From Auanema rhodensis (lineage: Eukaryota > Animalia > Nematoda): a stretch of 64,000 nt of DNA. This document shows, one piece after another, positions 8,784-55,621 of this stretch. Every line of letters starts with the position of its first letter. The first letter of the stretch is position 1. Under the pieces are notes generated by a model. The model was not told the origin of the DNA. It did no database searches and saw nothing but the letters and a program-made list of their open reading frames with translations. Both the position numbers and the translations under genes were made by a program. The DNA is taken from assembly GCA_964057225.1 (NCBI GenBank), contig OZ059896.1:18166001-18230000 (forward strand). The letters are read 5' to 3'.

Positions 8784-9002
8784 TCAAAGACGGTATTATG
8801 TATCCGTATTTTACTGTCCGATACTCAATGAATGCTAACTGGTATTTCTGGGATTATTTGTTTCTTAATACTAACTGTGTACATAAAACATGGGCTTAAT
8901 ATGGATTTCTCTTATGCTTGGGTTTCATTCCCCTTTTTGTTTATTATTATTTTGCCTGTCACTTTTGGCTTGACAGATGCGGTTTTAATTGTTCGGTTTA
9001 AG

Positions 9003-9376
9003 ATGAGTGCCAACGACTTTTACTATTCTGCTAAGTACGAAGACGATGAATTTGAGTATCGTCATGTTCATGTTACCAAGGTGATATCTACTCTCATCAC
9101 TACTATATGATGGATCCTTTTAGGAGGTAGCTAAGTTGATCCCAAAGAATAGACTCATGTCAGAGTCAGAGTGGAGAAGTTTGGGTATTCAACAGGTACA
9201 ATAGAAAAAAACCATGAAAAAGCGGGCTATTCACCTAATATTTTTAGTCTCCTGGCTGGATACATTATATGATCCATTCTCCAGAAAGACATGTCCTCCT
9301 GTTTCGACGCCCTCTGCCTAACGCTCAGATTCCCGACAAGAAGAGAGGAAAACAGACAATCTCTAACTGTGCATAG
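9003..9376 (+). CDS. cks-1: CDK regulatory subunit CKS, copy B (tandem paralog)
   Basis: Same three-exon structure and motifs as copy A ([20 protein letters not shown]), with a different C-terminal tail. Confidence 0.95.
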
Positions 9377-9559
9377 GTTATTAATAGCTTTACTCAATTT
9401 TATCCGTTTTACAAGTTATAATTTTATTCATGTACATTTTTCTTACATTTTTGATTATCTTCTGATAACAAATTGAGATATGATTTACTATAAATAAAGT
9501 TTAAGGCTTTCACAAACTCCGTAAAAAAAATCAACGACTAGATTTATGAGCTAGATATT

Positions 9560-15500: not shown

Positions 15501-15887
15501 TGTTTTTTTTTGATTTTCTTCAAACCCGAAAGTTTATACTCATAACAGCATCAATTTAAACAATGCAAAAAACTGAATTGTTCACAACTTCTCGGAAAGA
15601 TAGATGGAGCAGGTTTCATTTAGCCGACGAACGGAACAAACATTACCGAATTTCGTAGAGAAGTGATTTCAGTATTGAGAGGAAAAGTCTCAAAAAGTCC
15701 ATTTTCTATCTAAAATAGGTTGTTAGAATAAAAAGTTTAATTTTTTTTCGAATTTATATCAAAAGACCTTTTCAAATAAATCTGCAATCTGCATACTATT
15801 CATGGTTACTGGCAGAGCCGAAGCTACAGCAAATGCGCTGCCGGCCGCCTCAATCCAGTGTGGCTTTCGATTGCCGGCTTGGACCAT
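9560..15887 (-). CDS. kdin-1: KIDINS220/ARMS orthologue (ankyrin repeats, KAP NTPase, TM helices, SAM-like domain)
   Basis: Ankyrin-repeat exons at about 13860-15365; Walker [12 protein letters not shown]; [14 protein letters not shown]; [16 protein letters not shown]; [11 protein letters not shown]. First exon [40 protein letters not shown]. Confidence 0.93.
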
Positions 15888-16834
15888 TGTTAGCTTTCCG
15901 GATGAAGCTGCCAGTGCCGCAGGGCTTTCGTTTCAGGACTCCTTTTGCGCGTATGAGCTGGTCCCACGGCTCAGTTTGTCGAGTCGTCCGTCGTTTTTAT
16001 ACAATTTACAATAAATTCGTTTGAAAAACTGTAAATATTACTTAAAGTAAAGCAGTTATAATATATTTTTCTTTTGCTATTATTATAAACGTTAATATAA
16101 AAAATGTCAATTGTTGATTCAACATAAAAAATTATACATACATGATTTTGCTTCATTATATCTGACATAAAACAGAAACTGAGAGAAATGGGAGGAAATG
16201 ATAAAGATGTGATTGAGGTGAACACGAGTTGTGCGGACGGAAAATAGCGTAAATACAAGATCGCAAGCAGATTAATGGAATTTCATTGATGCTCTCTGGC
16301 TAGCATCATTGCGTTCTCTACTCCTATGAATGAGAAAAGATGATGATGATGATTTGAATAAGAAGAGAGGGGAAGAGCCCAATTTTATGAAATTACTGGG
16401 TTATATCGAGTAGTCACAATGCTGCATTTCATCGACAATGGTTGCTTGTCGTATACTGAATTGAGCTAGAAAAATAACATTCAAGGAAATTGATGTTTTT
16501 GAAGTTTTTGTAGTGGCAAATGAATTTGTAAATGATCCCAGTTACTTTTCTTCATCAAAAAGTGCAAAATATTGAAACAGATGGTAAGATAACACAAAGA
16601 AAGCGAGAGAAGACTGCAACATTAAAAGAAACGAAAGAAAAGATAGAATAGTATACATATAGACAACGAGAGAAATTATGAATGAACAGCAATCTTTTCA
16701 TTTCTTCGACGAGTGAACGAGTGTCAGCGTTGATTAGAAAAAAAGTTTAGTTTAGAATAACTGAGCTATTCGGTATTTGAGTAACATTTCAAGAATAAGA
16801 GAAAAGAATCATGATGCGAGAACTAATATGATTT

Positions 16835-17045
16835 CCGCCTCTTGATGTCGCCCTCTTTACTCTTCGTAAACGAACCTATAGGCTCTTGCCCACATAAATG
16901 CATGAACATCATTGCGGTAGCATTAACCTGACTGCTTGTAAGACTACCTATCATTTATGATAGGAACTAATATTGCAGATCAATTTTAATTGATAAGACA
17001 AACTCAACGATTCGCCTGTCTACCTTCTTACTATTGGCAAGTCAG
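16835..17045 (-). ncRNA. Candidate structured RNA of unknown class with two multibranch domains
   Basis: Nested complementary stems found by eye. Several pair fully only on the minus strand through G-U. No known family recognised. Confidence 0.4.
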
Positions 17046-17185
17046 AAAGTTATAATCAAATAAAAATTTACATATAAAACTAGAATAATTTATACTAAAA
17101 AGTTTACTTTAATCACAGTATATCGAGTGTAATAACAATGCAGATTAGGCTAAATAGCGTTAAATACGCAAAACAGTTCAATAAT

Positions 17186-17740
17186 TTAAAGATCAGTGTT
17201 ACGATCAATTTTCATGAGTTCTACATCAAAGCGGAGAACGGAGTTTCCTAAAAAAATGAATAAAAAGCTGTTTCAAAATACAGCAACGCTTATACTCACC
17301 TGGGATCTTGGGAGGAGCTCCACGCTCTCCGTAACCAAGATGGGGAGGGATAGTAAGTATACGACGTTCTCCAACGCACATTCCCATGAGTCCTTGGTCC
17401 CAACCCTTAATCACCTGAAATATTTCTAAGTGAATAATCGTTATTTTGACATTTCCTTCATACTTGACCCATTCCTAAAGTGAAAGTGAATTCTTGATTA
17501 CGAGTGCGGCTAGAATCGAACTCAGTTCCATCAAGGAGAGTTCCTGTGTAGTGCATATGGAGAAGATCACCTTTTCTATAATTTGAACTTTTTGTTAATA
17601 ATAATAATGGCTAATGGTAACCTTGATTTCACATCGCAGTTTTCAGCTCTGGTTTTGATACCAATTTGCAACTTATCTGCCTTCTTTTCAGCAGAAACGA
17701 AACCAATAATAACTACGGCCAATACGAAACCCCACTTCAT
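17186..17740 (-). CDS. fkb-1: ER FKBP-type peptidyl-prolyl isomerase (FKBP2-like)
   Basis: Signal peptide; KLQIGIK; [22 protein letters not shown]; [29 protein letters not shown]; C-terminal NTDL resembling an ER retention signal. Confidence 0.94.
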
Positions 17741-18085
17741 GATTCTTACTGAAAAAAGTGTTATGACTCAGAAATGACGTACTCATAGTATCATATGAAG
17801 AAAAAAAATCATGAAGAGACAAGGATGAATGGTGGTCAACCAGTGGGTGTCAAAAAAATCGATACCTGTAAGGTAAACTGATAGAAAGGGCTTTATTCGG
17901 AAGAGGTTTAAACCAAAAACTATATATATAAGATAAAAGACGAATGAAATAATTATTACACGACATGTAAAGTGAAATGATGATCAAAATATAAGGCACA
18001 AATATGGAGTTTTCGATGAGGTAGATCAAAGTATGTCATTGGCTAAAAAACTAATAATGAAAAACATTTTAATGATAAAGAACTG

Positions 18086-18928
18086 TTATTCGGTTCGATT
18101 GTCTTTAGAGCCCGATTCACTCTGGCGCTGCTTCCACAGTTCAAGTTCTCGTTGATAAGTAGACCTAAGCTCTTCAGACCTTTTGACATACTTCTAAAAA
18201 ACGATACTAAGTTTTTTTTAATGTGGTAGAAACAAATTCACCTCCTTTTCCGGAGTAGATAGAACATCCCATTTCTCTTTGAGGCTCTTAGCAACATCGG
18301 ATACAGGACTGACTTTCTGCCCCGCAGCCTTCAACTTAGCGAACTCATCCTTTACAAAGAGAGAATAGCTATTCAATGGCAAGTCTGGGTGATTTGTCTT
18401 TTGCCAATACTGAATGATCAAGGTTTTGATCAAAGGTTAATCACGATATACTAAACCTCTCGTTTCTCCTTCCTCATTTTGCGCTTAGACTTCTCTTCTT
18501 TTCCCTGCTTTGATGCAGCTATCAACTTTTCTTGCTCCTCTTCCGAAAGCTGCTTGAACTGAGAAACTTTCTCGTCAAAAATACTTCTTGACTTATCGGC
18601 GTAGACCTTGAACACCGCTTACGGTTACATTCGTATCGAGTGACTTCCTACCTTCTTCTCTTGTTCGGTGAGGCTATTCCATTTGGCAGCAAAAAGCTTA
18701 CTAACTTCCCCCACTTTAGTACCCTTTACTGGTGGATTGGTTTGGTACTGCTCCTTGATAAAAACAGCATAAGGACTTACTCGAAAGCCAGTAACCGGAA
18801 GTTTAGTAGAGGCTTTCTCTAGCCTGTAATCCCAATTGAAGTGATTCCAAGTATAAAATTACTTACGTAGATTTGCTAAGAGAAACAGTAAATAACCGCT
18901 TGGAAACGGAATTCAAAACACTATTCAT
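18086..18928 (-). CDS. hmg-5: Mitochondrial transcription factor A (two HMG boxes)
   Basis: Ser/Arg-rich presequence MNSVLNSVSKRLFTVSLSKS; HMG box 1 (SPYAVFIKEQY...AAKWNSL); HMG box 2 (PLNSYSLFVKDEF...KEKWDVL). Confidence 0.85.
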
Positions 18929-21699
18929 CTGAAACATTATAAATTCAAATTAGATTACAACTTCTGGAGTAAATTAAGAATTTCAAAAGTCATGCAATAG
19001 AATGGTAGAACTATGCACCAATAATACACCAGATTTGCGTAAACAGTTTTGTCGTGTTGGTTCACAATGCGAAATATTATCATCATTTAATTAAGAGTAT
19101 TTATAATGAAAATAAAACAAAAACTTCATTTTTATGTTTAATTCTTGGACATTCTAACACATTTATAGATCAATGAACAAAAATCATATATTTTTTTATG
19201 TTTTTTTCTGAACGGCTGTTCAATCAGTATTAGCAATTAGAAAAGTTAAGATTCAGAGAAAAATTGATTCTTTCAAATTAGAAGCTTTAAAGCAATTAAG
19301 TTGAGAACACGTATCGTTTCTATGAGATGATAAAAAGAAATGTCATGAATGGTCTTAATAAAAATAAAATAATGTGGAAAAAGTTCCTTTAGCCTAACAC
19401 GCGATACACCGAGTTGGACGTGTCAAACATTCGTTGGAAAAAATTCTAGGATCAAAGCAATTAAACACAACCGATTTCTGCGTACAATAGAAAAAATATT
19501 GAAGACTTGCTTGGCTAAAATCCAGAAATTCTTCGCGCCTTGTGAACTATTCAAATTCTAATTATTATGTAAACAAACTGTCTTTCCAATTGACTTTTTG
19601 TGAACGTAATATATCATATTTAAATTTTTTAGTTATTAAAATAGTGAATTATGTTGACTTGATGATGTATATTCGATAAGTATTGCTCTTATTTGTTTAT
19701 CTTATCTTTGTTAAATACCAAATGGATAGAATAGACTTTTTTAGTATACAGATTAATAATTTGTAGGTCATCCAATGCTCACTATATAATCTAAATATGT
19801 AAACTTTTTTTCTAATAGGGTTACTTCTGGGAAAATATACAGAAAACAGAGACGAAACTTTTGTTGAAATCTAAGCAGCATTGAGATCATAAACATGACT
19901 ATCAGAGCCATAAATGGGTAACATTCGTACAATTATCTATGAAACAACAATAATTTTTATTTCTTTCTTAACCCGAAAGAAACCAAAATTTGAGATCGTA
20001 ATCCAAATATGCTTCGAAGTATATTCCACTAAGAAAGGATTCCAATAGATTATTTCGTCTTTTCCACTGATTGTTGAGGTGTAGCAGTTTTCTTGTCATT
20101 TTTCTTATTGGAAGGTGTTCTGAATACATTATTATTTTAAGAAAGAAAAGTTGTAACTTACTTCTGCTTTCTCACTGTCATAAATTTTCGCAGGAAAGAT
20201 ATGTGTAAAATCATGCTGATATCATAAAAGTAATCTATCTAAAGAAGTTAATAAAGACTTTTTTTTAAAAACATATGAATAAAAAAGAAGCATATTCTTC
20301 TATGAAGTTTATGTAGCATGAAAAAGTAAAAACGACGAGTAGAAACAAGCTATCTATGGCGAGGAAACGATTCATTCCAGAGGCGGGAAGGAAATTTCGT
20401 CAATATTGAATCAAATGTGAATCTAATTGTCATTTAATGAAATTATGGTTTGTTTTAGAAACGATTCCAACTCTTCTACCTCCTTCATTTCATTTGTTTT
20501 GCCGGAAATTGTGATAGAGATTTTTTGTGAAAAAGCTATTTTTCATAGTTGCATAATGTAGCATTTCTGATTTTGAATAGTTTAGATGAAAATCATTTTT
20601 TGAAGAAGTCTGAAGAGAGATCTAATAATATTTTACGATGTTCTTTGATGTTAACTCAGAATCTTTATACTAGCTGAGTAATCTTAATTGCTAACAATAA
20701 TAGAGAAGATTCTGATTATCTTCCAAGAAACCTCTACCGGATACCGGAAAACATCTTTGCGTATGGGGAAAGCAAAGAAAACATGGACATAAGGCAAATT
20801 CTCAGCTGTTATGTTGAGTTTCTGTCTTGCTGTCTGAAAATTTAAATGGCTGATAGGCTCAGGCAATGAAATCGAATCGACGAGTGTGACTCTGTAATCC
20901 CATCGTTTGAGTAATGACCGGACGTGTTCCATTCCAGGAGTTACAGATCGAAAAATTCAGCACAACGTTTCAAATATGTCAATCTTTTGGACAATGTGCA
21001 TTCTTTTTGCAAAGTTGATAAGTATATCAAAGTTTCTGTTTTGTACAACAGTTCTCTCATACGGGAACAAAATATTGAGAGAAAACCAATTAAGTTGTTC
21101 TGTAGGAATAAAGCTGCATCCGTGCACAGAGTTAAACATGATTAAAGCACATCTGAATCTGATTATCAAAGTCTATTTGTTTTGTTCCAGAATGGTTTTT
21201 TAAATTAGCGTTTCAGAAGTGATTTCTAGTCTGAGAGTTTCACCTTTAACATTTTTAATCTAATTTTTAAGCTTTTTTGCTTCGGTTACTCTCTTAGATC
21301 AAAAGTTCAGTAAATCTAAGAAGTACATTGGTTGTTGCTCAAAGCTTCAATCCACTGCTGAATGTATGAGAGTATTTCTAGTAAACCAAGATGAACAACT
21401 TAGAATGGAATAGAACCAGATGAACATTTCTCTATAACGAGATCTCAGCCACAATGTTGTGTTCTCGTTAAGATTAAACCTTTGCCAACTTGAGCAGCAT
21501 AATATTTGTGAAAGAACGGAATAATTCATACAAAGGTCGAAATCAATAAAGCTAAATTCCTTATATGGTGAAAGACGAGACGATTTGATGAATAAGTTAG
21601 ATACAATGTGTGGGAGAACATGAACTGATCATTATATTCTTTAACTTAACCTTCATTCAAACACATTGTGTCAAGTTATGCTGATTATTACACAGAAAT

Positions 21700-33400: not shown

Positions 33401-34211
33401 GATAACCAGAAAAGACAGAGATAGTCGCCAGTGAAGACTTTCATTGCCTATCTGACTTCCAAATTGACTCGGGCATTTCCAATAAAAAGATTTGCTCTTT
33501 GTGACGAGACCTTTTTCGAAAAATTTGGATGTCGCAGCTATAGTCTGAAGCCAAAAATAGATGTATGCGAAAACTTGTATATCTAGAAAAAAAAAATATT
33601 CTTAAATAAAAAATAAAAGGAGATGAAAACGGCAAAATATAGTATAAAGCAAAAAGACTTGCAGTGCATATCGTATGATGACGTTTTCTCGGCTACTTTC
33701 AAAAGTCTGCTTGAAAAATAGAAAATACGCCAAATTATATATATCTAAGTGTTCTTTGTTATAGAAATTGATAATTTTATTACTTTTACAACGTTTTTGA
33801 TGTATATATATTTAAAAAGTATTACATTTCTATTAGGGAGAGGTTATGTGAGGGTGGAAAGATGCAGATGTTAAATCATATCCAAGAATTTGATACAATT
33901 GAAAAAAATTGTAAGGAACATTTGTAAAAATAATCAGAAAATGATTTCTGCAGAATTTTTGTAATAGAAATACGAATATACTGGACATTCAAAGGGAACC
34001 TGATTAGAAAGAAGGAAGCATGTGATTAATAGTAATGGTGGAAATGAAAAAAATGTGAATCCAAAAAATAGGACTTCAGATAATCTTCTTAAACAAGTTA
34101 TTGAATATTTTGGTTTAGTCAAGATAAACTAATAAAAACATGATAATAAATGCAAAGATTGTGATATTGAATTGAAACGATAAGCAAATAATTCTAAAAA
34201 AACAATATAGT

Positions 34212-34213
<2 letters not shown>

Positions 34214-34297
<84 letters not shown>
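34214..34297. repeat. (GA)n microsatellite
   Basis: Long GA dinucleotide run with one interruption. Confidence 0.95.
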
Positions 34298-34298
<1 letters not shown>

Positions 34299-35321
34299 AG
34301 ATATAAAAGATATAAAAGAGAAAAAGAAAGTAAATAACAATTATATAAGATGTTTTTTCTTGCTTATCCTTCATCCAAGTTTGTGTGAACGCTTTACCAT
34401 CTACTCTTTTTATATTATACACATAACTATATTAATTATTGGAAATCATGAATGAATATGAAGATATTATAGTTTTAATACAAAAGCAACTTGTCATATA
34501 AACATTCGGGTAATTGCTTCTTGAAATTCTTGAAATGTTTACAACTTTACCAAAGTTTTTGTCGAGAAATTAATAAATGTTGAAACATAAATGTTTATCG
34601 GAAACAACCGTTCAATTCTTAATTAGAGATAGAAATGAAAATATTTCGTTGACAAATTGTCGATGTATGTACATATGTATATGTATGTAAAAGAAAGAAA
34701 TCTGAAAAGGGTATCAGAAGAATCGATGATCTTTATTCCAATTGTTCTTAGATTAAAAGTAATTTTTATTATTAAATAATTATAATTATTATAATTTTTC
34801 ATTATATTATTATTATCATTATGTATATATTAGATTTATACATTTTATATTAATCTTTAGGGACGAAATTATTATTTTGTTTTTAAAAATTCTAGAACAC
34901 ATGATCTCAGAAGATAACTCGCTTTTCAATATTGAAGATTGGAAATGTATAGTTTTATCTGTTATTAAGATATTTTAAATGAAACTCTGATACTTTAAAC
35001 TCATTTTCTAACAAATATTGATGGATAAGTTACATACATATCTTCTCCGTCATCTATATAATGACGTAATTTTTAAAATTAAAATATTCAAAATTTTAGT
35101 GATTTCTAGTGTTTATCTCGTATTTAAGTTTATTATAAATTGAATTCGTATATGTTCTTTCTAATTATAAATAATTTTTCAAAATTTCTTTCTTATCACT
35201 TTTATATATGCGCTATAGTATAGATAATATGACAAAATTTCAATAATTGCTCGAATTTTCATGAAATGATTTTTCTGATTTTCAGATTCTGGAGCAAGTT
35301 CAAGAAAATAACGGTTTTGAT

Positions 35322-37285: not shown

Positions 37286-37549
37286 ATGAAGAATTTATCA
37301 TTTATTCTCTTGTTATCTGCTATCCTTGTGGCAACTTTGGTATCATCAACAGAACAAGATGATTTCAATCAAGTATACGGAAAGGTAATTGCTTAAGCCT
37401 AAAACATTAGCTCAACTTCTATTTTTCAGATGTTTGGAATGGAGAAACGCTATCGTCATCCTTTCATGATGCTGAACCAATACAGACCATTACCTAAAAC
37501 CAAGCGTAATAGTCTTCTTGAAGACTTGTACAACATAAGATATTTTTAG
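37286..37549 (+). CDS. Neuropeptide-like (NLP) precursor
   Basis: Signal peptide and two KR sites releasing YRHPFMMLNQYRPLPKT and NSLLEDLYNIRYF; one GT-AG intron. Confidence 0.8.
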
Positions 37550-38250
37550 TTTTTTAATCACTAATTCGCTAATGTTTCTTTCCTTTAATATGATCTCTTC
37601 AATTATATACGCTTTTTATATAACAGCTTATAAAACCAGTTAATTGTGAAAATAAATATTGAAAATAGAAATGAACAAATACTTTGATTGATACAATACG
37701 CAAAACCAATAACATTGTAAGTCCGTTAGAAAAATTTAAAATATCCAGGGTAATGCTATTTTTTATTTTAAATCTACGTTGTTGATTTTATCTTCGTATT
37801 TTTCATTGGAATTAAAAATAAATGACCTGCTAAATGAAGAAAAAATGATGTAGGGCTAACTTTCTATTACAATAACATTCAGGATATAGTATACCGGAAA
37901 TAAAAACTTTTTATAAAATGAGTTGTTTATGTTTATTAAACATAGCATGTATATCAGAAATGGCGCGAAATTGGCAAATCTTTGTGACCCTCTCCACGCC
38001 TACTCATACTGAGATAATAATGATTAGACATAAAAGCACATTGTTTTTTCCATATTGTTTTGCCAAAGTTTACAATTTTTTGTTTAGAAAGAATTTTATT
38101 TATTTTCATTCATGAAAACTACTATTTGTTTATATACCTTAAGTTTATAAATGATTAATTCTGTTTCATTTTTTGTATTCACTATCTGTTTTTATAGCCA
38201 ATATTCTTTTGTCCATTTTTAACATAATTAATTCATTTTATGTTCAGAAA

Positions 38251-38777
38251 ATGAAAGCTTTCCTCATTCCCTTTTATTGCTTCGCGATTTGCCTAACATT
38301 TGGCATAGTCGATATTCCGGTCAAAAATGACAAATCAGTTATGATTGAAGTTAGTTTACTAAAGATTTCATTTATTTCATGAACCTAAATTTGTTACTTT
38401 ATTTGTTTAGACGAATAAAATCGGTTTTCGTAATGAGACAGCTTCTCAAGGAACCGCTACTTGCCCCGACAGGGACCTGGCACGTTTCCTCAATACTGCT
38501 CTGGTTAATTATATTCATGACATGGATGGATTAAGCCGTTACGTACTAAATCAAGTGAAAACAAATAAAAATAATATTTTTCTGAACCTTTACTTTAAAG
38601 ATAGTTTCATCTCGCAAGCCCGGCAAGTGGTTGGTACATGCTCAAGTCCTCAGTGGTACACGTCAGGGAAGAGATTGGCAGACTTCAACCAATTCTGATA
38701 TATTTTCTCAAAAAGATCAATATGCTTGTTTCTATCACGATAATTTTACTTATGTGCTTGTATTGCGTGTTTATTGA
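38251..38777 (+). CDS. Secreted ground-like (hedgehog-related) domain protein
   Basis: Signal peptide; three exons; CPDRDLARFLNTAL...KWLVHAQ...ACFYHDNFTYVLVLRVY fits the ground-like pattern. Confidence 0.65.
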
Positions 38778-39550
38778 ACATGATAAAATCATGAAATTAT
38801 TCAAAAATAAATTGTATATATAGTCCTGTGCGAAATAGTTGGGACACTCACTTGAATCCCTTATACCTTATCAGACAAACTACAAAAAATCAGAAAAAAT
38901 ATATTTTGAGTGTTAAAACACCATAATGAATTCAGAAAAAATCTTAAAAATTTTAAAAATCATGTTTAAAAGTAATTTCTGAAGTCTCCGAAATTTTCAT
39001 AAACTACTTGAAGTATTCTTTCTTGAATTTCAGAAGTTTCATCAAGACTTCAGAAATAATTTTTTGATAGAATGTTAGGAGTACACTAAACGTCTATTTT
39101 TCTTTTAAACGGGAGAATTTGGTTGTATGTTAACCAAGTTTTCTTCATAGATATTCAGTAAGATTCAGATGCTGAAGCTTACTTGTTTGAAGCTATGCCA
39201 TAGGAAAAACTTAGTTATTGATGGAGCTTTGTGCTCAGAATCATTTAAAAATATTTTTAATGAATTAATATGTTCCTAATCTCAAATTTTGTTATATTAA
39301 GATGAATTATTCAAAATAGTCAAAAAACACTAAATTTCCTTATAAATTTAGAAATATTATTGAAATCAGTTTTAATTATATTAACATATATTTTGACTGA
39401 ATATAAACTAGGCACTTCGCACAGGACTGTACATACACACAACCGTCTTAAAAGTCTTGAAGGGATTATTCTTCCGTGAGGTCCGGTGTTTGAAAACAAT
39501 ATATAAATCTTTTGTTGTGTTGTTATTCAGGCCAGATATTTAGATTCACG

Positions 39551-41827
<2,277 letters not shown>

Positions 41828-41973
41828 ATGTTATAATATGAATTAAAGTTATTTCTATTACTCTGAAGTTAGAATTCTGGGAATTGCGAAAAAAAAGTCA
41901 TCTGTAACGAAAAAACCAATATATACTATCGACATAACAAAATAACAGGCACTACGACACGCAAGAAAAATGA

Positions 41974-44900
41974 TTAAACATGGGGACTAGTGAGTGCATC
42001 TGGGAACCCGCTGAATAAAGTTTGTGGTGAAACGATCTGAATACCCATTTTGAATAAGCTTTGTCCAAGTGACGATGAAGGGTGCTGATCTGAATGATTT
42101 GTTAGTTACACCGGATATAAAGAGATTTAAAGTTACTTGACATGTAAATCAACCTCGTTTTCGGATGATGTTTGCGACAATTAAACATAGAAAGTTTTAA
42201 ACATTCAGAGATTTCCTGTAAATTAAAATTAGTATCCAGCTAACTGTAAGCAAGGTGAGCTCCAGCTAACTGTAAGCTAACTGTAAGCCTACATAATTGT
42301 TTTCATAGCGTTGGTTAAACTGCAAAAATTACCTTTTGTGTACGAACATGATTAACATCACAATCGTGTTCCACCATTACCCGCACTAATCCATTTCTTT
42401 CAAATTCCTTCAGCACTTCAAAATAGCCATTATAAGCATTTCTATTATTTTCATCAACCACTGATTTTCTAAAATTCACCATTTGCCAAATATTGCTGCT
42501 CATAACTACCAAACCTTTTGTGGTCTAATTGCTTATAACAATGTACGTGGAGGTGAATAAAATTTTTTTTATATTCATTATCTTTATGAGCATTAGACAG
42601 TTCCAATTTGGCACAGAACGATCGAAGATCTTCGGGATTTCTATAAAGACATATAACATGCTTGCGGTATTTCTGAACTTACAAGCAATGGGGATCAAAA
42701 CTTAAAATATCTGGAATAATTATATTTGCCCATTCAGCAGAATTCTGTACAGGAGAACCCCAAGATCGATTTGGAGAAGTTGGAATTGAGGACCAGTAGC
42801 GATTCGATTTGGAACTAACTACTGGGGATCCCACTGATCTCAAAGGGCTTGGACTAGTACTAAAACTTGTAGGCATAGGTTTTTCAGTTGTTTCCATATT
42901 GATCTAATCAGAAGAATTTGCAACTATTTTTATATTATATCAAACTTGAGAGGAAGGTATATTAATCGGTTGATCTCCTTCATCTTCACTAACAATTTCC
43001 CCATCTTCTTCTTCGTCTATAATATCAGGGGAAACTGAATTACTTTTTTCTGAATGCATGCACTTATTGAAGCAAAACAGATAGTTTCGATACCTGATAG
43101 CGGGATTGCTCTAGTACTAATAGTTGAAGATTCTTCAGCAAGGGGTGAAGCAGCTTGATCAGGTGAAGCTGGTCCAAAATCAGGAGATGCGGGAGATGGC
43201 AAAGTATCTATAGCAGAATCTATAGGAATAGATTTCCCCATGTGATGCTGACAACTTCCAGATGCTCGATTATCTCCAGCACATAAATCAGGTTCAGGCG
43301 ATGCAGGGGGAGGGCATTCAGTATAAGATGATGAATAGGAAGTATGCGGGATATCTTTCGAAAATCTTGAAGATGCGGGCGCCCCTATTTTGTTTTTATA
43401 TCCATATTTAGAAAATTGATTATGAATTCCCGAATTACTATATTTATGAAGAGTCTGAGTAACAGTATTTCCTGGGAAGTAAGATACTGCAGGCTGAAAC
43501 AAGATAAAACTAAAAAAAACTCGATTAATACAGCCGTACCATAGGTGGTGATGGTTGACTATGAGCTACAACATGATTATTATCATCGACTAACTTATTA
43601 CGTTGCTTATTCATAACTGAAAACAATGATAAAAAGTGTATGAAAACGAACAAAAAAAACGCACGGAGAGCCATCATCCTTTGACGAGCTTCTGCAGCAC
43701 CTCCGCCTATAGGAGTTCTACGAAGAGTTGAACTTTCAGGAGGTAAAGGATTTCGATCGGCCCCATTGAACTTGGGCTGATTAATATTCTTAATTATTAC
43801 AATTAGATACGTACGAACAAAATTATACCTGATCTTTCTTAATATTTGTTTCTAAACTTGGCTTTTTTTTTATTTCAAAAGAGATGAGCTTTTTCTTTGT
43901 TGGACATTTTTCAATTTTTAGGGGTGAATTTTCTTTTTGGGGTGAATTAGTTTCAATAGAATCAATGTTCTAAACACAAATTTGACAAAAATTAAGAAAT
44001 TATTTCTCGAATAAATAAAAATAGTACAGTACACTTACAGTCTGAACTTTCGGTCGAATATCAACATCCGCGACTGCTGGATTAGCAGGACTTACAGCAA
44101 CTGAAACATTTGTTGATGTGAAGAACAAAAACATTCGAATACCTGGAACAGGGGGAACATCGAAACGAGACTTTCTCTTAGATAAATCAATCGGTGTTGA
44201 TGTTGTTACTTGTGTAGGCTCTTCCCCAATTGTAGGAGGAACGGAATTGGCCAGAGATTCAAGTAAACTTGAAACGCTGTTATTCAATTCCATGGTGTCA
44301 TTGGATTGAATCTACAAATCAGATAGGGTTCAGATTATCACAACATAATAATAAACCTCAGAATCACGTTGATTGTTGTCTTTCTTAGCACCACCAAGAA
44401 TGTTTCTTAATAGTTCATCTACCTGACTCTCTTCTTCTTGATGTTGTGGCTTCAAAATGAAAAAAAATTGACAATAAATAAGGGGTTTTATTACCAATTC
44501 AACGATGCTCGGGTCAGAACTTTCAGATGACTCTTTACTTTCAGATTCATCCACTGAAAAAAAAGAATAGAAGAATATAATATTAAAATAATTACATTTT
44601 TCCTCAATTTCTTTAATAGGCTCCGGGTCAGGCTCAGGATCAACAATAGCTATATTAAATCTGCTGTCGTAATCTATATCATTCGGATCAACTACATCCT
44701 AGAAAAAAAAATAAGAATAGAAATTGTACTTTTCCGACTTTGTCTGTTACTGGAGAGAAACTGCGATTCTCTTCAGAATCGGATTCAATGTCCATATCCT
44801 CATCCTTTAATATTTTGGTACATTATCATAGGGTTATCTGAACAAACCTGTGGAGTACCGACGGAAGCTGCTTCTCGCGTGGAACAAGCATCCATCGGTT

Positions 44901-47498
44901 CAACAGGAACAATATTCTATAAATGAACAAAGTAATTGAAAAAGAGTCGTAATGTTATATTACCTCTTTAGAGGTACTAGGCAATTGGAAAGGTGTTAAT
45001 TCAGTAGGCGCTATTGCTGAAATAAGTACAGCTCGAAACCATAAAAGAACTAATAATCACCTCCATTTTGGGAATGAAGAGAACTTAAGGCATCCTGGAA
45101 AATACTGTTTATCTTCTGTGGAGGTTCATTAGAAGCAGAAGGACTGTTTACGCCATTAGCACTAGAAGGTGGTTGTGACAAAGTCTGTTAAATAACCTAT
45201 ATTTCTGGAGAATTGTATCAAAGCTAACTTGTTTATCATGCTCGAGCTCTTTCTTCAGTAATGCTTTTACAGAAATTTGATCAGCTGATCGTTCCTTGTC
45301 GAATTGGGAAATATTAGAAAGAGGAAGTCCACAATAATCAGCCCAACGTATTCTTCTCTTTACCGGCTTTTCAATTTGAATCAAACTTCCTTTATTTTTT
45401 CCTTTACGAGCAGCTTCTTCGTCTTTCTTGGATAAAATGCCTAAATCACAATGCTATTTCATTTGGACTAAAGTAACTTACTCTTAACTCCTGCAGGGAT
45501 AACGTAAGGTTTGAACGCTGGTGTTTCAACTCGAGAAGGTGCTTAAATATTAAGTATAAAACAGAAAAGCTATAAACGTTTACCTCTAATTGGTCCTACT
45601 GAAGAGGGTAAAGTTTGCATAGCGTTTCGCAGCCTAATACTATATGAAGCAGCAAACTCATGACAATGCTTTATGAAGACCTCTGTATTACCATCGACTA
45701 ATACAGCATTTTCAATATTTGCTTGAGAAAGCTCCCTTAATAATGAAAATTCAGATAAGGAGAAACAGTTATAATTTTACTTTTCATTTTGCCATGCTTT
45801 ATACATATCATCTTTGGAGCCTACTAAACTCAAATTTTTCCTTAGAAATACAGCATGCAACAGATTATCAGTTGAATAGTATGGAAAACCCATACGGGAA
45901 CTCAATTCCCCTTGTGGAATGAGAAATACTAAATAACTTGATTCAGCATATCCAACAGCACACTGAAAATGTCATAAAAAATGAATTTATAGAATAAAAT
46001 GGAATACCAAACGCTTTTCGACCATATTTTCGACTTTTTTAACAAAATCGATGTTAGTTGATTTATACAAGTAATGAGCAGCAAACCAACAATCATTATC
46101 ATCAAGCTGAAGTAATATTTATTTCATGAACATATTCCTTTCCGAAGAAGTTTAAAATACCTGGATGGATATTTCTTTCGTTAATAAAACATGTCCCCAA
46201 TATTTATTTTCAAGAAGCATTTTAAACGCGGGATGGGTGAGTGCATCTTTCCAAAAACAGAACTGCTTGATTTTGAAATCATTCCTTAAATTTTAAAATT
46301 ATAGATTTGTATTTGTAAAAAGCAATTCTTACAGTAATACTGGTCTCACAGCATATAAATTATCACATATGGAGCTAAGCTCGAACTTTTCTTTAAAGAT
46401 ACCGTTGTTCCAAGTGCTTTTACATACTTCTTCACAACCACTATACCCGCTAAAACCAAACAAGATGCTAAAGCAAAATTGTTTCTTATGCTAACCTGAT
46501 ATGATATCGATGACATGGAAGACTTTTAAAAGAAGATGATAAAATGAGATCAAACACCGCATAAGGCCATGTACCAGAAGGAATTTGTTCCGAAATTCCA
46601 TTACCGTTTAGCTCGTAGTAAAAAACCTAAAGTTGCTATCAAAATAGTTTCATTTAATATTCACTTACAAGACTATTCCTAAACTTAACATATCTGTTAC
46701 TACGATTGCTCCGTCCTGGAGCTGAATCAGATACCAAACAGTTAAAATCAGGAGATAACACGTTTTTAGCACCAAGTGAAATTTTTTTCTGCCGTCCTCT
46801 GCAAAAGGATAGCATTACTTTCATTAAAAAAAACCTTTTAACTTACTTTACAGTTTTAAAAAGAACAATTCGAAGCGGAATGTCTTTATAAAATAGAGCA
46901 GGGGTAACGAGATCAGGATTAGTAGAAAGATAAACTCCTTTAAGAAAACGCAAAATAAATATCATTATGTTAAGTTTATACCATGCTCCGCTTTTCCTAA
47001 TTCGCTAAAATATGAAGAATTTGTATGATATCCATTCCTTAATATATCATCAACCTGAAAACAATTGTTATATGTTATTGAACAAGCAGTTCACTTGTTG
47101 AGTTGCAACTGGTGCATGAAGGAATCCCCAAGATTCCAAATCCGAATAGCCATTCGCTTTTATTTTCGATTTATGATTCAGGAACTAAAGAGAACATGTT
47201 TTAGTATGTTCTTAAATTATTATACTAGCCTTCCGTTCTAGCTTTTTGTTAATAACTTTTCGGACATTCTGAAGTGATAAAGCCGAACGCAATCTGGTTT
47301 CAGATAAACATTTGAAAACCACAGATTCTATTTCTTTAAAGGTGGAGCTATTCGGTGCAGTATCAATGAAGCGAACGTCATCCCCTGTTAAATATAATTT
47401 AGATTGAATAAAGTATAACAAAACAACTCACCACTGAGATCAGAAGAATTATCTAAGGCTCTTTTCTTTTTTGGAATGGTAAATGGAAGATTCGACAT
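41974..47498 (-). CDS. TASOR: TASOR/FAM208-like protein: DUF3715 pseudo-PARP, SPOC, low-complexity linker, PIN-like domain
   Basis: N-terminus FTIPKKK...RKVINKKLERKF...ESWGFL...ELGKAEHGVYLSTNPDL...IVLFKTVKGR...VFYYE...WPYAV; SPOC end LVFLIP...LLHAVFL; C-terminus EFERNGLVRVMVEHDCD...RLIYMS...MGIQIVSPQTLF. Motif order is colinear with vertebrate TASOR as recalled. Confidence 0.8.
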
Positions 47499-48646
47499 CT
47501 AAAGAAAATACTTTTTTTTTTTTTTTTTTCTTGAATTACTTTTTGATATCAATAAAATCCTATATTCTGATATTGAAAATATTATTATAAGGGTAGGATT
47601 ATAAAAACATCCCTACTGATCAGCAGGATAGTAGCCTGAAATAGAAAAATCTACTTTAAATGTCCCATTGCATTTTTGACAAGCAATCAAAAACTCTGCT
47701 AGGCGCACATGCCATGCCTATGGCTCGACAAGAAAATGTCTCGAGTACGCAAAGAGCGTTACATTTCACGAAAAGACTTTGCCGTTTACCAAACTATGAT
47801 CAATTGGTCAAAAACTTGACAAATTGTTGAGATGCCATAAATTTTTTTCTAAGAACAATCACACTATTTTCTACGGACAGATGATATGTGAATTTTGACA
47901 AATTGCTCATTATAATGAAATATTAAACAACGATTTCATAATACTATATAACAAATAAATTAGCATATAACGAAGAAATACAAATTCAATAACTAACAGT
48001 TCTTAAATTCATTTGAAAAATCTGCAAAATTGTTCTTCAAACAATTAAACGCAGTCTTATCGAGGTTAGCGTTTCAATTTTTTTTCGTATGACGAAGAGA
48101 AGAGCATGGCCGATGAATCACCTTATGTGTGGATATTGGTAGCAATCATGTTACATTATTTCGATAAAAGTCGATAATAAAAGATTTCTTGTCAGAGAAA
48201 TGTTTTGATTTGTATTATGTATAGCTTTTAAACTGTGGTATTTTCTATAAGAATTTTGAAAAATGTGATGTAATTAAAGTTTCGATCGTCTTTTGCTCTT
48301 TCATAAAATGCAACTAGTCTTTGAATCACGTGGTATTGACTGGAAAGTTCACGTATGCAAAAAGGTCACGTCAACAATGAACATGTTCGAACTCATTTTC
48401 ATTATATAATATTACCAGTATTTTTGAGCTATACATAAGATTTGCATATGATCCGTTTCTGTCTAATATCATGCAACTTTGTCATATATGTACTACTGAA
48501 TTAAGAAACGTTTTGAATATATAGGTTTTATAAATCATGAAAAAGTAAAAGACAAAGAGTTGTAAGAGAGAGCAACAGTCTAGATCTTCATTTGGTGACA
48601 GTTCAATGTATACAACAGGTACAAATTGCTACTTCATTCTGCCAAA

Positions 48647-48931
48647 TCATCGCCGTCGTCCTATCCTCATTAGATTTCCAAGGTGGCAGTCTGCACATTC
48701 TTTCTTTTCAGCACGCTTTCCCAGTCGCATCATATTCGACAAACTGGCTCTCTTCCAATAACGATATTCCGGATCGGTTCTTAAATAATACATCATTAAA
48801 TCAGCTAAAACAATTTTAGAAGTAAGTCTGGAAGATTTAACTCACTCATAATCCGATGACGTAGGAACAAAAAGTTGTGATTGGACCGAAGCGAAAATAA
48901 CGGCGAAAATAATCATGAGAATGAACTTCAT
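48647..48931 (-). CDS. nlp-17: Neuropeptide precursor NLP-17 (MRxamide)
   Basis: Signal peptide followed by KR-ASLSNMMRLG-KR and ECADCHLGNLMRIG-RRR, matching the NLP-17 peptides GSLSNMMRIG and CESCNLGTLMRIG. Confidence 0.9.
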
Positions 48932-50621
48932 ACCGCTAGTTCTGTAACAATTTCACTTTTGAATTTGAGTTCATCAATATAATGAACTTCTATGTAGATT
49001 ATATAAACAATTATAGAGTTTAATTTCATAATTATATTTCACATATTAGATATTAGGGGGAGATAATTATTATTAGCTAATAAAAAACTTTTCTCGTCAT
49101 TCTGGAATATTTAATGCCACCAAATGATCCATAATCGTTGGCACAAATATTCTCGGTACTAAAGATGTTTAAAATAGATCTGGAGTTTCTAGTAACAGGG
49201 AGAGAGAGAGAGATATTTCTTCTATAGATATGACAACAGAAAGTTTTAAATTAAATTTTTATGAATTATAGCAATTTAACTTTTGAAATATATATCGAGT
49301 TTGAAATAATGATGTACAGCTAGGAAATCTTGAAAACATGTTCATAAAAGCTTATGTCTGAATTAAAAAAGTAGAAAATACAAGAATATTTCGCATACGA
49401 GTGTTGGGAGCAAGAATTTTGTTGCAAAATATAAATATAAGTAAAGTTTAAGAAAAGAAGCTTGCAAAAAATTTCCACATTTTTGTAAAAAATTGTAAAG
49501 TCTTCTCCATAATAAGATATTGGTAAAATTATTTCTTTTCGAAAAGAAAAGAATTATAAGTTTAAAAAATATGCTTAGATGGGTGGAGAAGCGGTAACTA
49601 CTGGAAAATGCCTCTGTTTCTGTATGATAGAAAAAGTACCGCCTCTCCCAGTGTGAATAATTGCTGAAGCTCATTTGGAGAAGGCAGAGCACACACGTTT
49701 ATTAGATAATGAGACAGTTTTCGCATTACTAATGCTTTGACTGCAGAACAGATGAGTTTGGGTATAACAGTGAGAAAAAAAAGCTATGGCGGTTGAAGTA
49801 TTTGATATAAAGAGAAAACTAACAAGATTTAGTTTTTCCAAGTTCAGGTGTTCTGAGCTACTGACGTATTACCAAGGATAAATTAAATAGGAGACAGGTC
49901 CGATTTGATGTATATGTAGTACCCGAAATATCAGCAGTACCTCCTTGAGATAATTGGTTCACGAAGGTTGCTTGAATATTTCATGCGATACTAAAATAAA
50001 TAATAAAAAAATTAATCATATAAATCAGAGTATATCAAAGACCTTCTTATAAATGCAGATTAACTTTTACGTTCATGTGCATATTTTTGATTTTTTATCA
50101 TCTTCACAATGAATTACTATTACAGCCAGACTACTATACCGCATTTCTATAGATAACCTTTTTCAAGATGTCGTTGATATCAATTGTCCAAAAATAGCAT
50201 TTTGGTATCCTTATTGACTCGTAAGTATTTTCATTAACACTCAGATTTGCAACCTATGTAGATCAGGTACTAATTTTATCAGTTTCACTTCCTTCTCCAG
50301 CAATAAAAGTTTTTACATCTACAGCTTAACAGTGCACAGCATCCTCGCGACCAGACGTCAGAACAAAAATATTAACGCACAATAATTTATTTTAAGCATT
50401 TGATGTATCTATTTTTGCCTAGTTTAGAAGTCAATTAGGAAGTATGCATTTCAAATAATATTTTTGTGTCATTGAATAGCTTTATATAAAATTTAAGTAT
50501 GGTTCCTTTTATCATCTATCAGCTATTTTAATGTTACAACATATGCATTGCATGCGTTAGTAGTGCTGTATGAGCCGGCCTTTTCAAGCATTCTTTTGTT
50601 TTGTTTTTTTTTGTTTTCAGA

Positions 50622-52381
50622 ATGTCAACAGCTTTATCTTCTACACGAACTTCACAGCGAAGGTCTCTTTCCTCTTTTTCAAGCTCAACATCATTTTCTC
50701 ATGCTATGAGTAGCATTGATAATAGTAAGCCTGCTGTTGTCATTGAAATAGGAACAAATTTAACCAAGTGAGCTCATATATTGTCAGAACACAACAACAA
50801 TACTTTTACAGATGTGGTTTTGCTGGTGAGAAAGTTCCTCGAATTGTTCGAACACAATTCAGAGATGAGCTACTAAAAGTTCAAAAGAGCTTGTTCAATG
50901 AAAACAAAACAACAGTTGAGCCAAATATTAAAAGTATTTTCAAATTTTTCAAATATTTATTCTATAAGTATGTTTGAATGAATATACATGTAGCTTAATT
51001 TATTAATTAATATTCAGTGTTTTGATCACAATGCCTCGTGAGCGTAGAGTAATAATTGTTGAAAGTGTGTTTTCTCCCATTGAAGTGCGTCAAGCTATAT
51101 GCAAGGTAATTGGACTTTTAGATGATTTCAGTACTTTGATTGATTTAAAAATGTTTGTGTTCAACTAAATCAATTTAGGTTTTACTTGATATTTTGCATG
51201 TTCCTTCCGTGTTGTTCATGCCTAGTCATTTGTGTGCAACATTTCCTTTCAATACGAAAAATGCTTTGGTGTTAGATATTGGAGTTAATGAATCTTCGGT
51301 CATTCCTGTAAGCTTCACTTTGCATCTTTTCTCAGGCACTACGAATAATTCTTTTTGAAGATTGCTGAAGGCGTAACAATGCTAAATAATTGGTATATCT
51401 CCCCAGTAGGATACAAGATGCTAGCGGAGAATGTTAAAAATTTAATGTACGAGCATGGAGCAATTATTGAAATTGATGGAGGTGAAAGGAAGTTAACGGA
51501 TGAAGATTGGCTTTATGTTGTCGTTAGTATTTATTTTTTTTGTTTTTGATCTAATTTCATTAACATAGGAGAACGACATTCTCGAACAAATCATATGTCG
51601 GACCTTGTTTTGTACTACGAAAGAAAGAAGCTTGTTGATACAAAAGGCAATTACCAATATTTAAATTTCCAGTTATGTATGCTGTTCAGGGAGAAGAATC
51701 CTTGTTAAGTCCGATTCCTGCTGCTTATGAAATTCCAATTCGAACTGAAAAGCTTAAAGTGCCCGGAATCGTCAGGTACTCAGCGCAAAAAGTTTCAAAT
51801 ACTTTTAATTCATTCAGAGAGTCAGCTTGTGAAATATTTTTCGAATTCAAAGCTAATGATGACCCACCAATCCACATACTCATAAATCGTGTAATTGACA
51901 CTGTAATTTTTAAAAATTCAATATTTTTTATACTTACAAATTATATCAGGTCCCGATAGATTTGAGAAAATCTATGTATTCTGGAATTCTCATAACGGGA
52001 GGGATATCCTTGATTCCCGGCTTTATGAGTCGGTTGAAAGTAAAACTTTCTTTTTTTCATGTATTCATAAATATACTTTTAGGAAGAATTATTATTATGT
52101 ACCAGTAACAAAGAAAACAAGGCGAATAGTGAAGTCAAGTTTTACTTATTCAGTGATCAACCAACACCACTTTATCAAAATTGGCTAGGAGGTTAGTCAT
52201 TCAGACTTCTATTCTTTATTATGATTTTGTCTCTTAAGGTAGTTTGTTTGGTGGACTACAAGATGCTGTTCAATTACGGTCATTAACACGAGATCAATGG
52301 TTATGTAAGCCTGTAGTTCCTGATTGGACTGATTATGTTGAACATAATATTAAATGTGGAAAAGTTGATATGAATAGTTAA
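50622..52381 (+). CDS. arp-11: Dynactin actin-related protein ACTR10/Arp11
   Basis: AVVIEIGTNLTKCGFAGE, PRERRVIIVESVF, LFMPSHLCA, ALVLDIG, PIDLRK, WLGGSLFG, VPDW. Confidence 0.9.
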
Positions 52382-52587
52382 AAAGATTTATTTCACTGTT
52401 TAATGTATGTATGCTGTATTTATATAATAGTAATTATTACAGATAATTGACCTGTGAAAGTTTTACTTGTAATTTTCAAAGATACTACACGCATTGTGTT
52501 TCTATGGGTATCACAGTGTAATAAATAAGTTATTACTTACAAAAAGAATAAAAAATTGTTGTTCACATAGTAGTAGGGTAGTAATAA

Positions 52588-53630
52588 TTAGTTTGAGGAG
52601 GGATTTTCAGCCTTTTCATTCCTATTTTGGCTCCTAACGTTTTTAATGCTTGAATAAATCCTCCGAAGAAAACTGGGCAAAAAAGCATGCTGAGAGTCCC
52701 CATAGATCGTGAAATGTAGATAAGATAACGGAACATTTGCCAAGATTGAAGAAACGGTATCTGAAAAATTATACATAAAGATTGAAGATTGAGCTACACA
52801 GCTAATTGTAACCTGTAACATTATAATGCCAACAATAGCTAGATAATGAATTTCGCCAAGTAATCCTAAGAAGTGAAAGATATTTTGCGAGTCGGAAAAC
52901 ATATCCGATGATTTGATATTTAAAAGCTTCTTTAAGTAAAAATTTTCAATACTAATATACAAGTTTTCATATAAATATACCTGATAAGAAAGTCGACAGG
53001 GTGGTAGTAGCTTCATTCGTAGAGCAACTATTGTAACCGTTGTTAGAGCTAATAAGGTTATTAATGATATTTCCATGAACGATCTTTCTATACAATATAA
53101 AAATGTAACATCCAACAAAAGCAGAATTACTAGTAAGCTTATTAATTCCGATCGGGGCAAAATATACTCTGAAATGTGTAGCACTTGTCTTCTAATTTAA
53201 ATTAATCATATCATCTTCATGGTGTACTTTTAAATAGCAAAATCCATCAAAGTTAAACATCAGAATTACAATATGTTTTTTGAATAAAAGGCCTGGAAGA
53301 TTTAACTAACCCTGTTTATTCCCTGACCAAGTAAATTCCAGTATTATCAAAGCAGTGCATATTGATAACAACACAGCATGCGCATCATTTGAAGTGCTTG
53401 TAAAATCTGAAGGTTTTGCATGACGAATAGCTTCTGTTTTGATATTTGAATTTGACTGACAACTACAATGACAGTTACAAAGTGATATTACCTGTTCCGG
53501 ATGTTGCATAGTTAACAAGAACCCAATGTAAAGCTAAAATTCCTCTAACGGTGGTTGTAAAAAATGGACAAGCAAGCGAGCTAGCCGTCGCAACAAAAAG
53601 CAATAATCCAGCACACCAACTTGATACCAT
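52588..53630 (-). CDS. Uncharacterised multi-pass membrane protein
   Basis: Several hydrophobic exons flanked by GT/AG; exact exon joins not resolved. Confidence 0.5.
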
Positions 53631-54975
53631 TACATATTATCTTTAATTAATTTATGTTTATACAATTTATATAATATGTAAAGACATCTACGATTAGCAA
53701 TAGAATGACAAAAAATTAAAAAACAATTTTAAAATTTTAAATATTTATACTGAAATGACCTTGGAGAGTATAGGTTAAACGTAATTTGTAAATGTGCCAA
53801 CATCAGTACAGAGATAGATTTTCACAATAACGATACTTTAAAATCCGAAAATCAAAACTTTTCCTTTTGAAATAACATATGTTAATGAAACTCAAATGAT
53901 ATGTCAAGTAGTAACACGCAGAGAAGATCAATTACTCGCTGAATTGGAGAGCTTCAAAATCAATTTCCCCTTTGCCAAACTCCAATGCAAACACCAAAAA
54001 AGAACAAATTTCAAGCATTTTCGCATTTGAAATGAACGAAATGGCTATAATACAGTTCAAATGAACATTGTATGAATCAGAAGAATCATTTCATCTGCAC
54101 TCTGATAGATTCTCTCTCCATTTCTCTTTTTCTCTCATGTCCTAAGAGTATAGAGCGTAGTCATATTGATCCTTCTCTTATCCTCTCGTTTTCTCTCCCC
54201 TCTATGTAGTCTAACTAACAAAAGGTTTGTATAAAATATAACTGACACTAGTCAATAACTCAAGAGTCAATATCATGGTTATAATGAAGTTAAGCAGTTG
54301 TATACAATCAAATCTAATTTACTTCAAAATATTTAAACTGCAAAAGAAGTTTTAATGATTTTTGAATCTTTCTGTTTTCAAATGTCATAAACTTTACCGT
54401 ATTGTGTACTTTAACCAATTCTTAGCAGATATTGATCATTCTACGAAAATTGATACAAAGAGTAGAATATTTGTTGTTTATGACAATAATTCTACTATTT
54501 CGAGTTATAAAGACTGAGATCAGTGAATAAGCTGTCTTGTTAACTTTTGAAACATGTTCTTAGCTTCCACTAAATACAGCATTGTTAAAGTTTTTGAAGG
54601 AACATACGCAACTAAACAAAAAAAGGATTGTTTAACAGAAAAAAACTTAGTTCCAGAACAAAAATTTATTTGCAAATAGCCGGAAAAAAGAGTGAGGTTC
54701 AAGCATAATTGCTAATCACAAGGTAATAGTTACTACCCCTATGCAGAAAGAGAATGAAACGTTTGGGAGAGAGCAAGAGAAATACTCAGATATTCAAACA
54801 TAGTTTACAGAAAATAATATAATATATTACAAGGTAAGGTTAAAAAGTTAAAATGAAGGAAAGTAAGGGAAAAGCATGGTGAGTTGTATGTATATTTGAG
54901 CTGATTCTGCTGAGCAAATATCTAACAAAATATCATTATATATATGTATAGTATAAGTATTTGTAATATAAGCAT

Positions 54976-55621
54976 TTATTGGGGCTTGTTTTCTGGCTCA
55001 GGAGCTGGTGCAGCTGCAGAACTTGGTTGAGCAGAACTTGCAGACGTAGTAATAACCTTGATAGGAATAGTCCGAAGTGGAGAAGCTTCCTGGAAGAAAC
55101 AGATTATCGATTGATACTATTGAAGGTATAACAAACATACCCTTTTGGGTGGTAATGCGACAACTGTTAAAACTCCATCAGACGTTAAGTTGGAATTGAC
55201 TGCTTCAGGTTGAACACCTTTGGGGAGAGCGAATTTGCGGCAAAAACTTTTGGAAATCAATCCCAAGTCGTCCTTCTTATCAGAGAATGATCCTTCGATG
55301 ACAATTTGATCCCCAATGACAGAAACTTTCAGGTCTTCAGGAGAATAATCGCGTACATCGATAGTAGCATGGAAAGAGTCGTCAGCAACTCTGACGGATT
55401 CAGAAGCAGCATAGTTTTGGGTTGATGGGAAAGTTAATCCTTGAAGAAGATCACTCTAGAAGAAGAAAGCAAAGAAATACAGAATAGTATGTATTTAAAT
55501 TTACTGGTAAATTAGTGAAGTGAGAAGCCATTGGATGAGAAATACGAATTCGTGGTGTTTCCTCAATAATTTTCTTCTCATAAGTACGGTTGTAAGATGA
55601 AGAATGATTGAAAGTAGACAT
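54976..55621 (-). CDS. Small heat-shock protein (alpha-crystallin domain)
   Basis: FHATIDVRDYSPEDLKVSV...FCRKFALPKGVQPEAVNSNLTSDGVLTV and the IxI motif RTIPIK; three exons. Confidence 0.93.

Follow-up and report, generated by a model that had tools for sequence, protein, structure and literature searches.

A gene on the minus strand of a 64,000-nt stretch of the Auanema rhodensis genome (contig OZ059896.1, positions 18,166,001 to 18,230,000; hereafter the window, from whose first letter positions are counted) very probably encodes a homologue of TASOR (FAM208A), the core protein of the transposon-silencing complex HUSH (human silencing hub). The gene runs from 47498 to 41974, and its predicted product combines a DUF3715 pseudo-PARP domain near the N-terminus with a TASOR-type PIN domain at the C-terminus. 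An initial annotation, made by reading the window, had proposed such a full-length TASOR-like protein with DUF3715 and PIN in one gene, and this core claim is borne out by the corresponding protein of another nematode, Auanema sp. JU1783 (here P0001), which passes the Pfam thresholds for both domains. TASOR-family membership of the window protein is well supported by transitivity through P0001 and by a profile test in which window residues were mixed with those of P0001.

Gene model and orthologue

Between 41974 and 47498 there is no long bacterial-type open reading frame, and on the minus strand short open segments alternate with stretches of 40-50 nt, which start with GT and close with (T)nAG. 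Splicing these segments by hand gave 33 exons coding for 1,333 residues, a coding sequence of 4,002 nt including the TAA stop at 41976-41974. The 32 introns measure 31-117 nt, most of them 40-50 nt. All of them preserve the reading frame, no internal stop is created, and the donor and acceptor pairs are GT-AG in every intron but the second, whose donor, at 47229, is GC. In JU1783 this intron sits at the identical codon position with a canonical GT donor, and the residues around the junction in the window (LERK/FLNH, the slash marking the junction) pair without a gap to LEQK/FLNY. The GC donor could be either part of a true GC-AG intron or an assembly base error. At the 3′ end, two models with a last intron of 20-22 nt were dropped in favor of a 47-nt intron, which has the typical length, fits the C-terminus of the JU1783 protein and gives the ending ...RLIYMSNQH...GIQIVS....

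The start ATG at 47498 lies immediately 3′ of a TTTCTTTAG acceptor, which has the typical look of a nematode trans-splice site and probably is one, and the same arrangement of an ATG directly after an acceptor is found in JU1783. The JU1783 annotation gives P0001 an additional 14 residues at the N-terminus, encoded by an exon ~550 nt upstream (locus L001, 10001-10612). Since the ATG kept in both species directly follows a TTTAG acceptor, this extension may be an annotation artifact, or the TTTAG acceptor may be used for trans-splicing.

An exhaustive HMMER search of 1.84 billion representative proteins with exon 11 (60 residues) as query returned one relative only, the 1,300-residue P0001, described as an 'unnamed protein product' (assembly GCA_943334845.2, contig CALQYR020007199.1). 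BLASTP of the spliced model against P0001 produced a single alignment of residues 1-1333 with 15-1300 at 40% identity (E = 0), and identity over aligned positions was ~45% in a pairwise MAFFT alignment, in which the exon junctions were all gap-free or nearly so, including those of the GC-AG intron and the chosen C-terminus. Multi-fragment MAFFT alignments of exons to P0001 were misaligned and were discarded; only alignments agreeing with the pairwise placement were used. Word-indexed homologue searches with P0001 (the whole protein, its PIN region or its N-terminal 466 residues) returned the query itself or nothing, and scans of metagenomes with conserved patterns from exons 2 and 8 found no relatives. 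Single window exons, which are too short for the purpose, had no informative matches in Pfam and PDB.

The surroundings of the two genes also agree. Positions 37424-55621 of the window correspond to 3183-19590 of the JU1783 locus in an inverted microsynteny of at least 18 kb, with a common order of HSP20, a gene for 244 residues, an actin-related protein (Arp), a neuropeptide, the TASOR-like gene and, convergent with it, a DEAD-box helicase. Because the proteins align end to end and the gene neighborhood is common, the window gene and the P0001 gene are, as judged from these comparisons, orthologues. Per-exon identity to JU1783 is roughly 70-97% for the flanking genes versus about 40-45% for the TASOR-like protein, which by this measure is diverging much faster than the products of its neighbors.

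The splice choices of the initial annotation, including the GC-AG intron and, at the 3′ end, the last intron of 47 nt, gave a protein colinear with P0001 from end to end, and the motifs it had quoted are all present in the spliced model, where they could be located on the 1,333-residue protein (Table 1). We judge the predicted gene model to be sound because of the full-length colinear match, the junctions that are gap-free or nearly gap-free, and the shared gene order. A contrary view would assign the N-terminal and the C-terminal block to two or more separate genes, mistakenly united across a non-coding or low-complexity stretch. The model was made from sequence alone, the JU1783 model is itself a prediction, and the linker between the blocks is of low complexity and only 38% identical overall to P0001. 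However, the frame is kept through 32 of 32 introns, whose splice sites are standard, and is not interrupted by a stop, at least 10 conserved coding islands follow one another in an order common to the two species, the region showed no convincing context for an internal start or a terminator, and human TASOR has the same order of PARP, linker and PIN (Douse et al., 2020). There is only a very small chance that the blocks were falsely joined.

Domains and linker of the TASOR-like protein

The pseudo-PARP domain was recognized in Pfam and in PDB. P0001 scored 33 bits against PF12509 (DUF3715), or 36.9 bits for the isolated domain, with a curated cut-off of 28.5. When it was searched against all sequences of PDB, the one significant match was the pseudo-PARP of human TASOR (6TL1, chain 6tl1_A; E = 1.5e-8), spanning chain residues 9-208 of 214 (198/214 residues). 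A mixed profile, composed of residues 36-262 of P0001 together with window exons 2, 3, 5 and 6 plus the tail of exon 7, was then searched against PDB. With the window exons included, 6TL1 scored 43.5 bits (E = 2.6e-10), compared with 41.3 bits (E = 1.3e-9) without them, and TASOR was the sole real match; the window residues strengthen this match rather than dilute it. Chance is far from explaining the resemblance to TASOR.

The parallels with human TASOR motifs that had been drawn by eye reappear in the hidden Markov model alignment as LERKF/LEKEF, ESWGFL/ESYAFL, GVYLS/GVYLS, LFKTVKG/IFKIMKG, YYE/FYE and WPYAV/CPYAV (window/human). Where PARPs have their catalytic histidine, both the window protein and P0001 have leucine (ESW(G/A)FL, human ESYAFL), matching human L184, where human residue numbers are derived from the 110-332 delta261-269 construct. 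We propose that the PARP fold of the TASOR-like protein would be catalytically dead. An FLH motif was considered as a restored catalytic histidine and was dropped, as its histidine aligns one position past the catalytic site. In place of the extended β8-β9 loop of TASOR, the aligned domain has a loop of similar length, within which the alignment is uncertain. In human TASOR the pseudo-PARP is needed for deposition of trimethylated histone H3 lysine 9 (H3K9me3) and dispensable for complex assembly (Douse et al., 2020).

At the C-terminus, P0001 matched PF24630 (PIN_TASOR) at 43.1 bits (48.7 for the isolated domain; cut-off 27), with profile positions 2-134 of 141 covered. The PIN regions of the window protein and P0001 are colinear and 48% identical. 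The initial annotation had also seen a SPOC domain in the second globular block. DUF3715 and the TASOR-type PIN were matched as proposed, whereas the second block is without a SPOC-type Pfam match; when P0001 was searched against Pfam, no family at all was found for this block at E ≤ 10. The block has 225 residues and occupies the position of SPOC plus DomI in TASOR, being shorter than the ~285 residues of the human pair. AlphaFold2 models of P0001 residues 1-480 from a single sequence (predicted local distance difference test score, pLDDT, 32) and of residues 255-445 with the window exons (pLDDT 40) are too low in confidence for a fold search, because no deeper alignment could be assembled. 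A SPOC identity for the second block is a positional guess.

The linker of ~690 residues contains 14% serine, 11% proline and 8% glutamate, with 23% hydrophobic residues versus 35-37% in the flanking blocks, and is probably disordered. It holds about eleven short islands which are near-identical in the window protein and P0001 and occur in the same order, a pattern typical of scaffolds on which several partners dock via short linear motifs. One of these islands, KRRIRWAD, with a conserved GLPL coming next, is a candidate PP1-docking-like motif of the RVxF type. Near the N-terminus, the basic FTIPKKKRAL resembles a nuclear localization signal in composition and may act as one. Human TASOR binds Periphilin through its linker and MPP8 through SPOC-DomI (Douse et al., 2020).

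Overall, the window protein and human TASOR have in common the order of DUF3715, globular region, long disordered linker and TASOR-type PIN, and they share the leucine for the catalytic histidine, GVYLS, FK..KG and PYAV. They differ in length (1,333 versus 1,670 residues) and in SPOC/DomI, which is not detectable by sequence in the window-type protein. Human DomII and PIN together take up ~234 residues versus ~175 in the C-terminal block of the window protein, in which DomII may be missing. The hosts differ as well, human TASOR being from a vertebrate and the window protein from nematodes, which are known for nuclear Argonautes and small RNAs amplified by RNA-dependent RNA polymerase (RdRP). 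P0001, in contrast, shows the same intron-rich structure, flanking genes and linker motifs as the window gene. TEX15, a vertebrate piRNA-pathway (PIWI-interacting RNA) factor, shares the DUF3715/RDTS pseudo-PARP with the window protein, but it has TEX15 domains in place of PIN and is vertebrate-specific (Schopp et al., 2023). Since a TASOR-type PIN is present, the window protein is placed on the TASOR side and not with TEX15.

Proposed function and the NRDE-4 question

[quoted passage not shown] By this comparison the TASOR-like protein would be a nuclear scaffold that engages transcribed targets and bridges partner proteins, with partner-binding surfaces predicted in the globular N-terminal half and the linker motifs. 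Its scaffold action would lead to histone H3 lysine 9 (H3K9) methylation and to co-transcriptional repression of transposons or foreign genes. Homology combined with a broad scaffold role in chromatin or RNA silencing is the reading that we favor, with moderate confidence; a HUSH-type function in particular is a prediction from homology. The fast divergence of the protein fits a role in genome defense. Chp1 of Schizosaccharomyces pombe resembles TASOR in having a PIN-type domain at its C-terminus and in serving as a scaffold between nascent-RNA recognition and H3K9 methylation (Douse et al., 2020), and S. pombe, like nematodes, uses Argonaute and RdRP. However, Chp1 has a chromodomain and no pseudo-PARP, and it is likened to the window protein by description only.

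Several points weigh against a silencing scaffold of the TASOR type. The support for family membership comes by way of P0001 and the mixed profile and not from the spliced protein of the window itself. To our knowledge, nematodes have no known counterpart of MPP8, a protein with chromodomain and ankyrin repeats, or of Periphilin. SPOC/DomI, which is essential for HUSH assembly, was undetected in the Pfam scan of P0001. Opposite Y305 of human TASOR, the window protein has leucine and P0001 phenylalanine, in a loop whose alignment is uncertain; in the human protein this tyrosine lies in the extended β8-β9 loop and is essential for HUSH repression (Douse et al., 2020). The PIN domain, for its part, is dispensable in a human reporter assay (Douse et al., 2020), and because of this its conservation says little about mechanism.

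Some of these observations would suit a protein that is a genuine member of the TASOR family and has been repurposed in nematodes, e.g., as a PP1-regulatory or RNA-processing scaffold working through the RVxF-type and other linker motifs. Besides the unconserved Y305 position, the undetected SPOC/DomI and the HUSH partners that we do not know from nematodes, repurposing would account for the conserved KRRIRWAD and some ten further short motifs of the linker. [quoted passage not shown] On the other hand, both TASOR-defining domains were kept across the divergence of the two nematodes, the DUF3715 of zebrafish TEX15 still supports silencing when placed in TASOR (Schopp et al., 2023), and fast evolution suits defense better than housekeeping. 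We consider repurposing unlikely, though worth bearing in mind, and continue to favor the silencing scaffold.

A special case of the silencing scaffold is that the window gene would be the counterpart of Caenorhabditis elegans NRDE-4, i.e., that NRDE-4 is a shortened and very diverged TASOR. [quoted passage not shown] NRDE-4 is nuclear and links the recognition of nascent RNA to H3K9 methylation, the step which TASOR serves in HUSH, and three globular blocks with a short linker could fit into ~790 residues. With 788 residues and no recognized domains on the side of NRDE-4, the likeness to the window protein is a functional analogy only. The search with exon 11 of 1.84 billion representative proteins returned only the JU1783 protein, the word-indexed searches with P0001, which covered the 788-residue length class, found nothing, and in the literature searched no paper tied nrde-4 to TASOR, HUSH or DUF3715.

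Gene order bears on the same question. In C. elegans, hmg-5 is F45E4.9 and the neighbor of nrde-4, and an hmg-5-like gene within the same window would speak for the link. The initial annotation had reported hmg-5 here, and the gene at 18236-18819, which adjoins fkb-1, is probably the hmg-5/TFAM-like gene that was meant. The gene is thus present, but it is not adjacent; it lies 23 kb from the TASOR-like gene with several genes between. Other window genes named earlier (mes-6, cks-1, fkb-1 and kdin-1), together with nlp-17, are all on C. elegans chromosome IV. Compared with C. elegans, the genes seem to have been shuffled inside a single chromosome, and synteny is a weak argument here. Taken together, identity with NRDE-4 is doubtful. 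Equally doubtful is the wider idea that an ancestral TASOR-type scaffold works with a nuclear Argonaute/NRDE pathway as a RITS-HUSH intermediate, of which NRDE-4 would be the diverged orthologue.

Neighboring features and significance

The immediate upstream neighbor of the TASOR-like gene, in the window and in JU1783, is a neuropeptide gene, whose peptides resemble C. elegans NLP-17. On the other side, the DEAD-box helicase gene is convergent with the TASOR-like gene, with 3′ ends ~270 nt apart. Further along, a microsatellite on the plus strand (34198-34452), a GA-rich simple repeat whose translation in one frame is (RE)n, shows no sign of coding. Coordinates are collected in Table 1.

Table 1. 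Features of the TASOR-like gene and protein and of neighboring genes in the window (slash in intron 2, splice junction).
Feature	Position	Strand	Residues; exons	Sequence details	Basis
TASOR-like gene, whole coding region	41974..47498	-			hand splicing; colinear alignment to Auanema sp. JU1783 protein
Intron 2, 45 nt	47185..47229	-		GC donor (AAG/GCTAGT...TTTAG)	junction gap-free versus Auanema sp. JU1783
Basic motif FTIPKKKRAL	47454..47483	-	6-15	P0001 has FTIPKKRRAL	alignment
Pseudo-PARP DUF3715 domain	46498..47379	-	~25-245; exons 2-7		Pfam, PDB, profile, 59% identity to P0001
Second globular block	45585..46497	-	246-470; exons 8-12	contains LLHAVFL	44% identity to P0001
Linker, ~690 residues	42748..45584	-	471-1160; exons 13-29		composition and conserved-island scan
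Candidate RVxF-type PP1-docking-like motif	45337..45360	-	518-525	KRRIRWAD	identical in P0001
TASOR-type PIN domain	41977..42747	-	~1161-1333; exons 29 (3′ end)-33		Pfam of P0001; identity
N-terminal-half motifs, part 1				FTIPKKK 6-12; RKVINKKLERKF 64-75 (spans intron 2); ESWGFL 91-96	spliced model
N-terminal-half motifs, part 2				LGKAEHGVYLSTNPDL 123-138; VLFKTVKGR 153-161; VFYYE 203-207; WPYAV 222-226	spliced model
Second-block motif			393-399	LLHAVFL	spliced model
C-terminal motifs				FERNGLVRVMVEHDCD 1246-1261; ECL 1273; RLIYMS 1290-1295; GIQIVS 1311-1316	spliced model
Linker islands, part 1				KRRIRWAD, NSIFQDA, PTELTPF, DSDSEENRSFSPV, DPNDIDYDSRFNIA	shared with P0001
Linker islands, part 2				VDELLRNILG, SRFD.PP, FEIKKKP, EEGEIVS	shared with P0001
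Neuropeptide precursor, two exons	48608-48952	-		signal peptide MKFILMIIFAVIFASVQS; peptides ...SLSNMMRLG-KR and ...CADCHLGNLMRIG-RRR	75-82% identical to JU1783
DEAD-box helicase gene	37424-41700	+		769 residues in JU1783	Pfam DEAD and Helicase_C
hmg-5-like gene, two exons, each HMG-box-like	18236-18819	-		...YSLFVKDEFAKLK...KWDVLSTPEKE; ...SPYAVFIKEQYQ...KWNSLTEQEKK	translation

HUSH is commonly presented as an innovation of vertebrates and has been termed vertebrate-specific (Douse et al., 2020). TASOR-like proteins with DUF3715, SPOC and DomI have already been reported throughout metazoa, with nematodes not named in the text (Schopp et al., 2023), and P0001 already carries precomputed public Pfam annotations for both PF12509 and PF24630. 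In the literature searched we found no paper that connects TASOR or DUF3715 with nematodes. The window gene is a new and unstudied member of a known family, and not a new kind of system.

What the gene offers is a full-length TASOR-like protein in small, culturable free-living rhabditid nematodes, which have RdRP-amplified small RNAs and nuclear Argonautes. In such animals one could test directly what the scaffold did ancestrally and how it relates to RITS-like, Argonaute-guided silencing. The gene raises the questions of what role the enigmatic pseudo-PARP has, whether the ancestral TASOR acted downstream of Argonautes, and which proteins stand in for MPP8 and Periphilin. If the link to NRDE-4 were true, it would give a structural identity to a long-standing orphan of nuclear RNA interference in C. 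elegans and would unify co-transcriptional silencing in worm, yeast and vertebrate. A nematode scaffold that worked with the nuclear Argonaute/NRDE pathway would be a living intermediate between the Argonaute-guided RITS of fission yeast and the small-RNA-independent HUSH of vertebrates.

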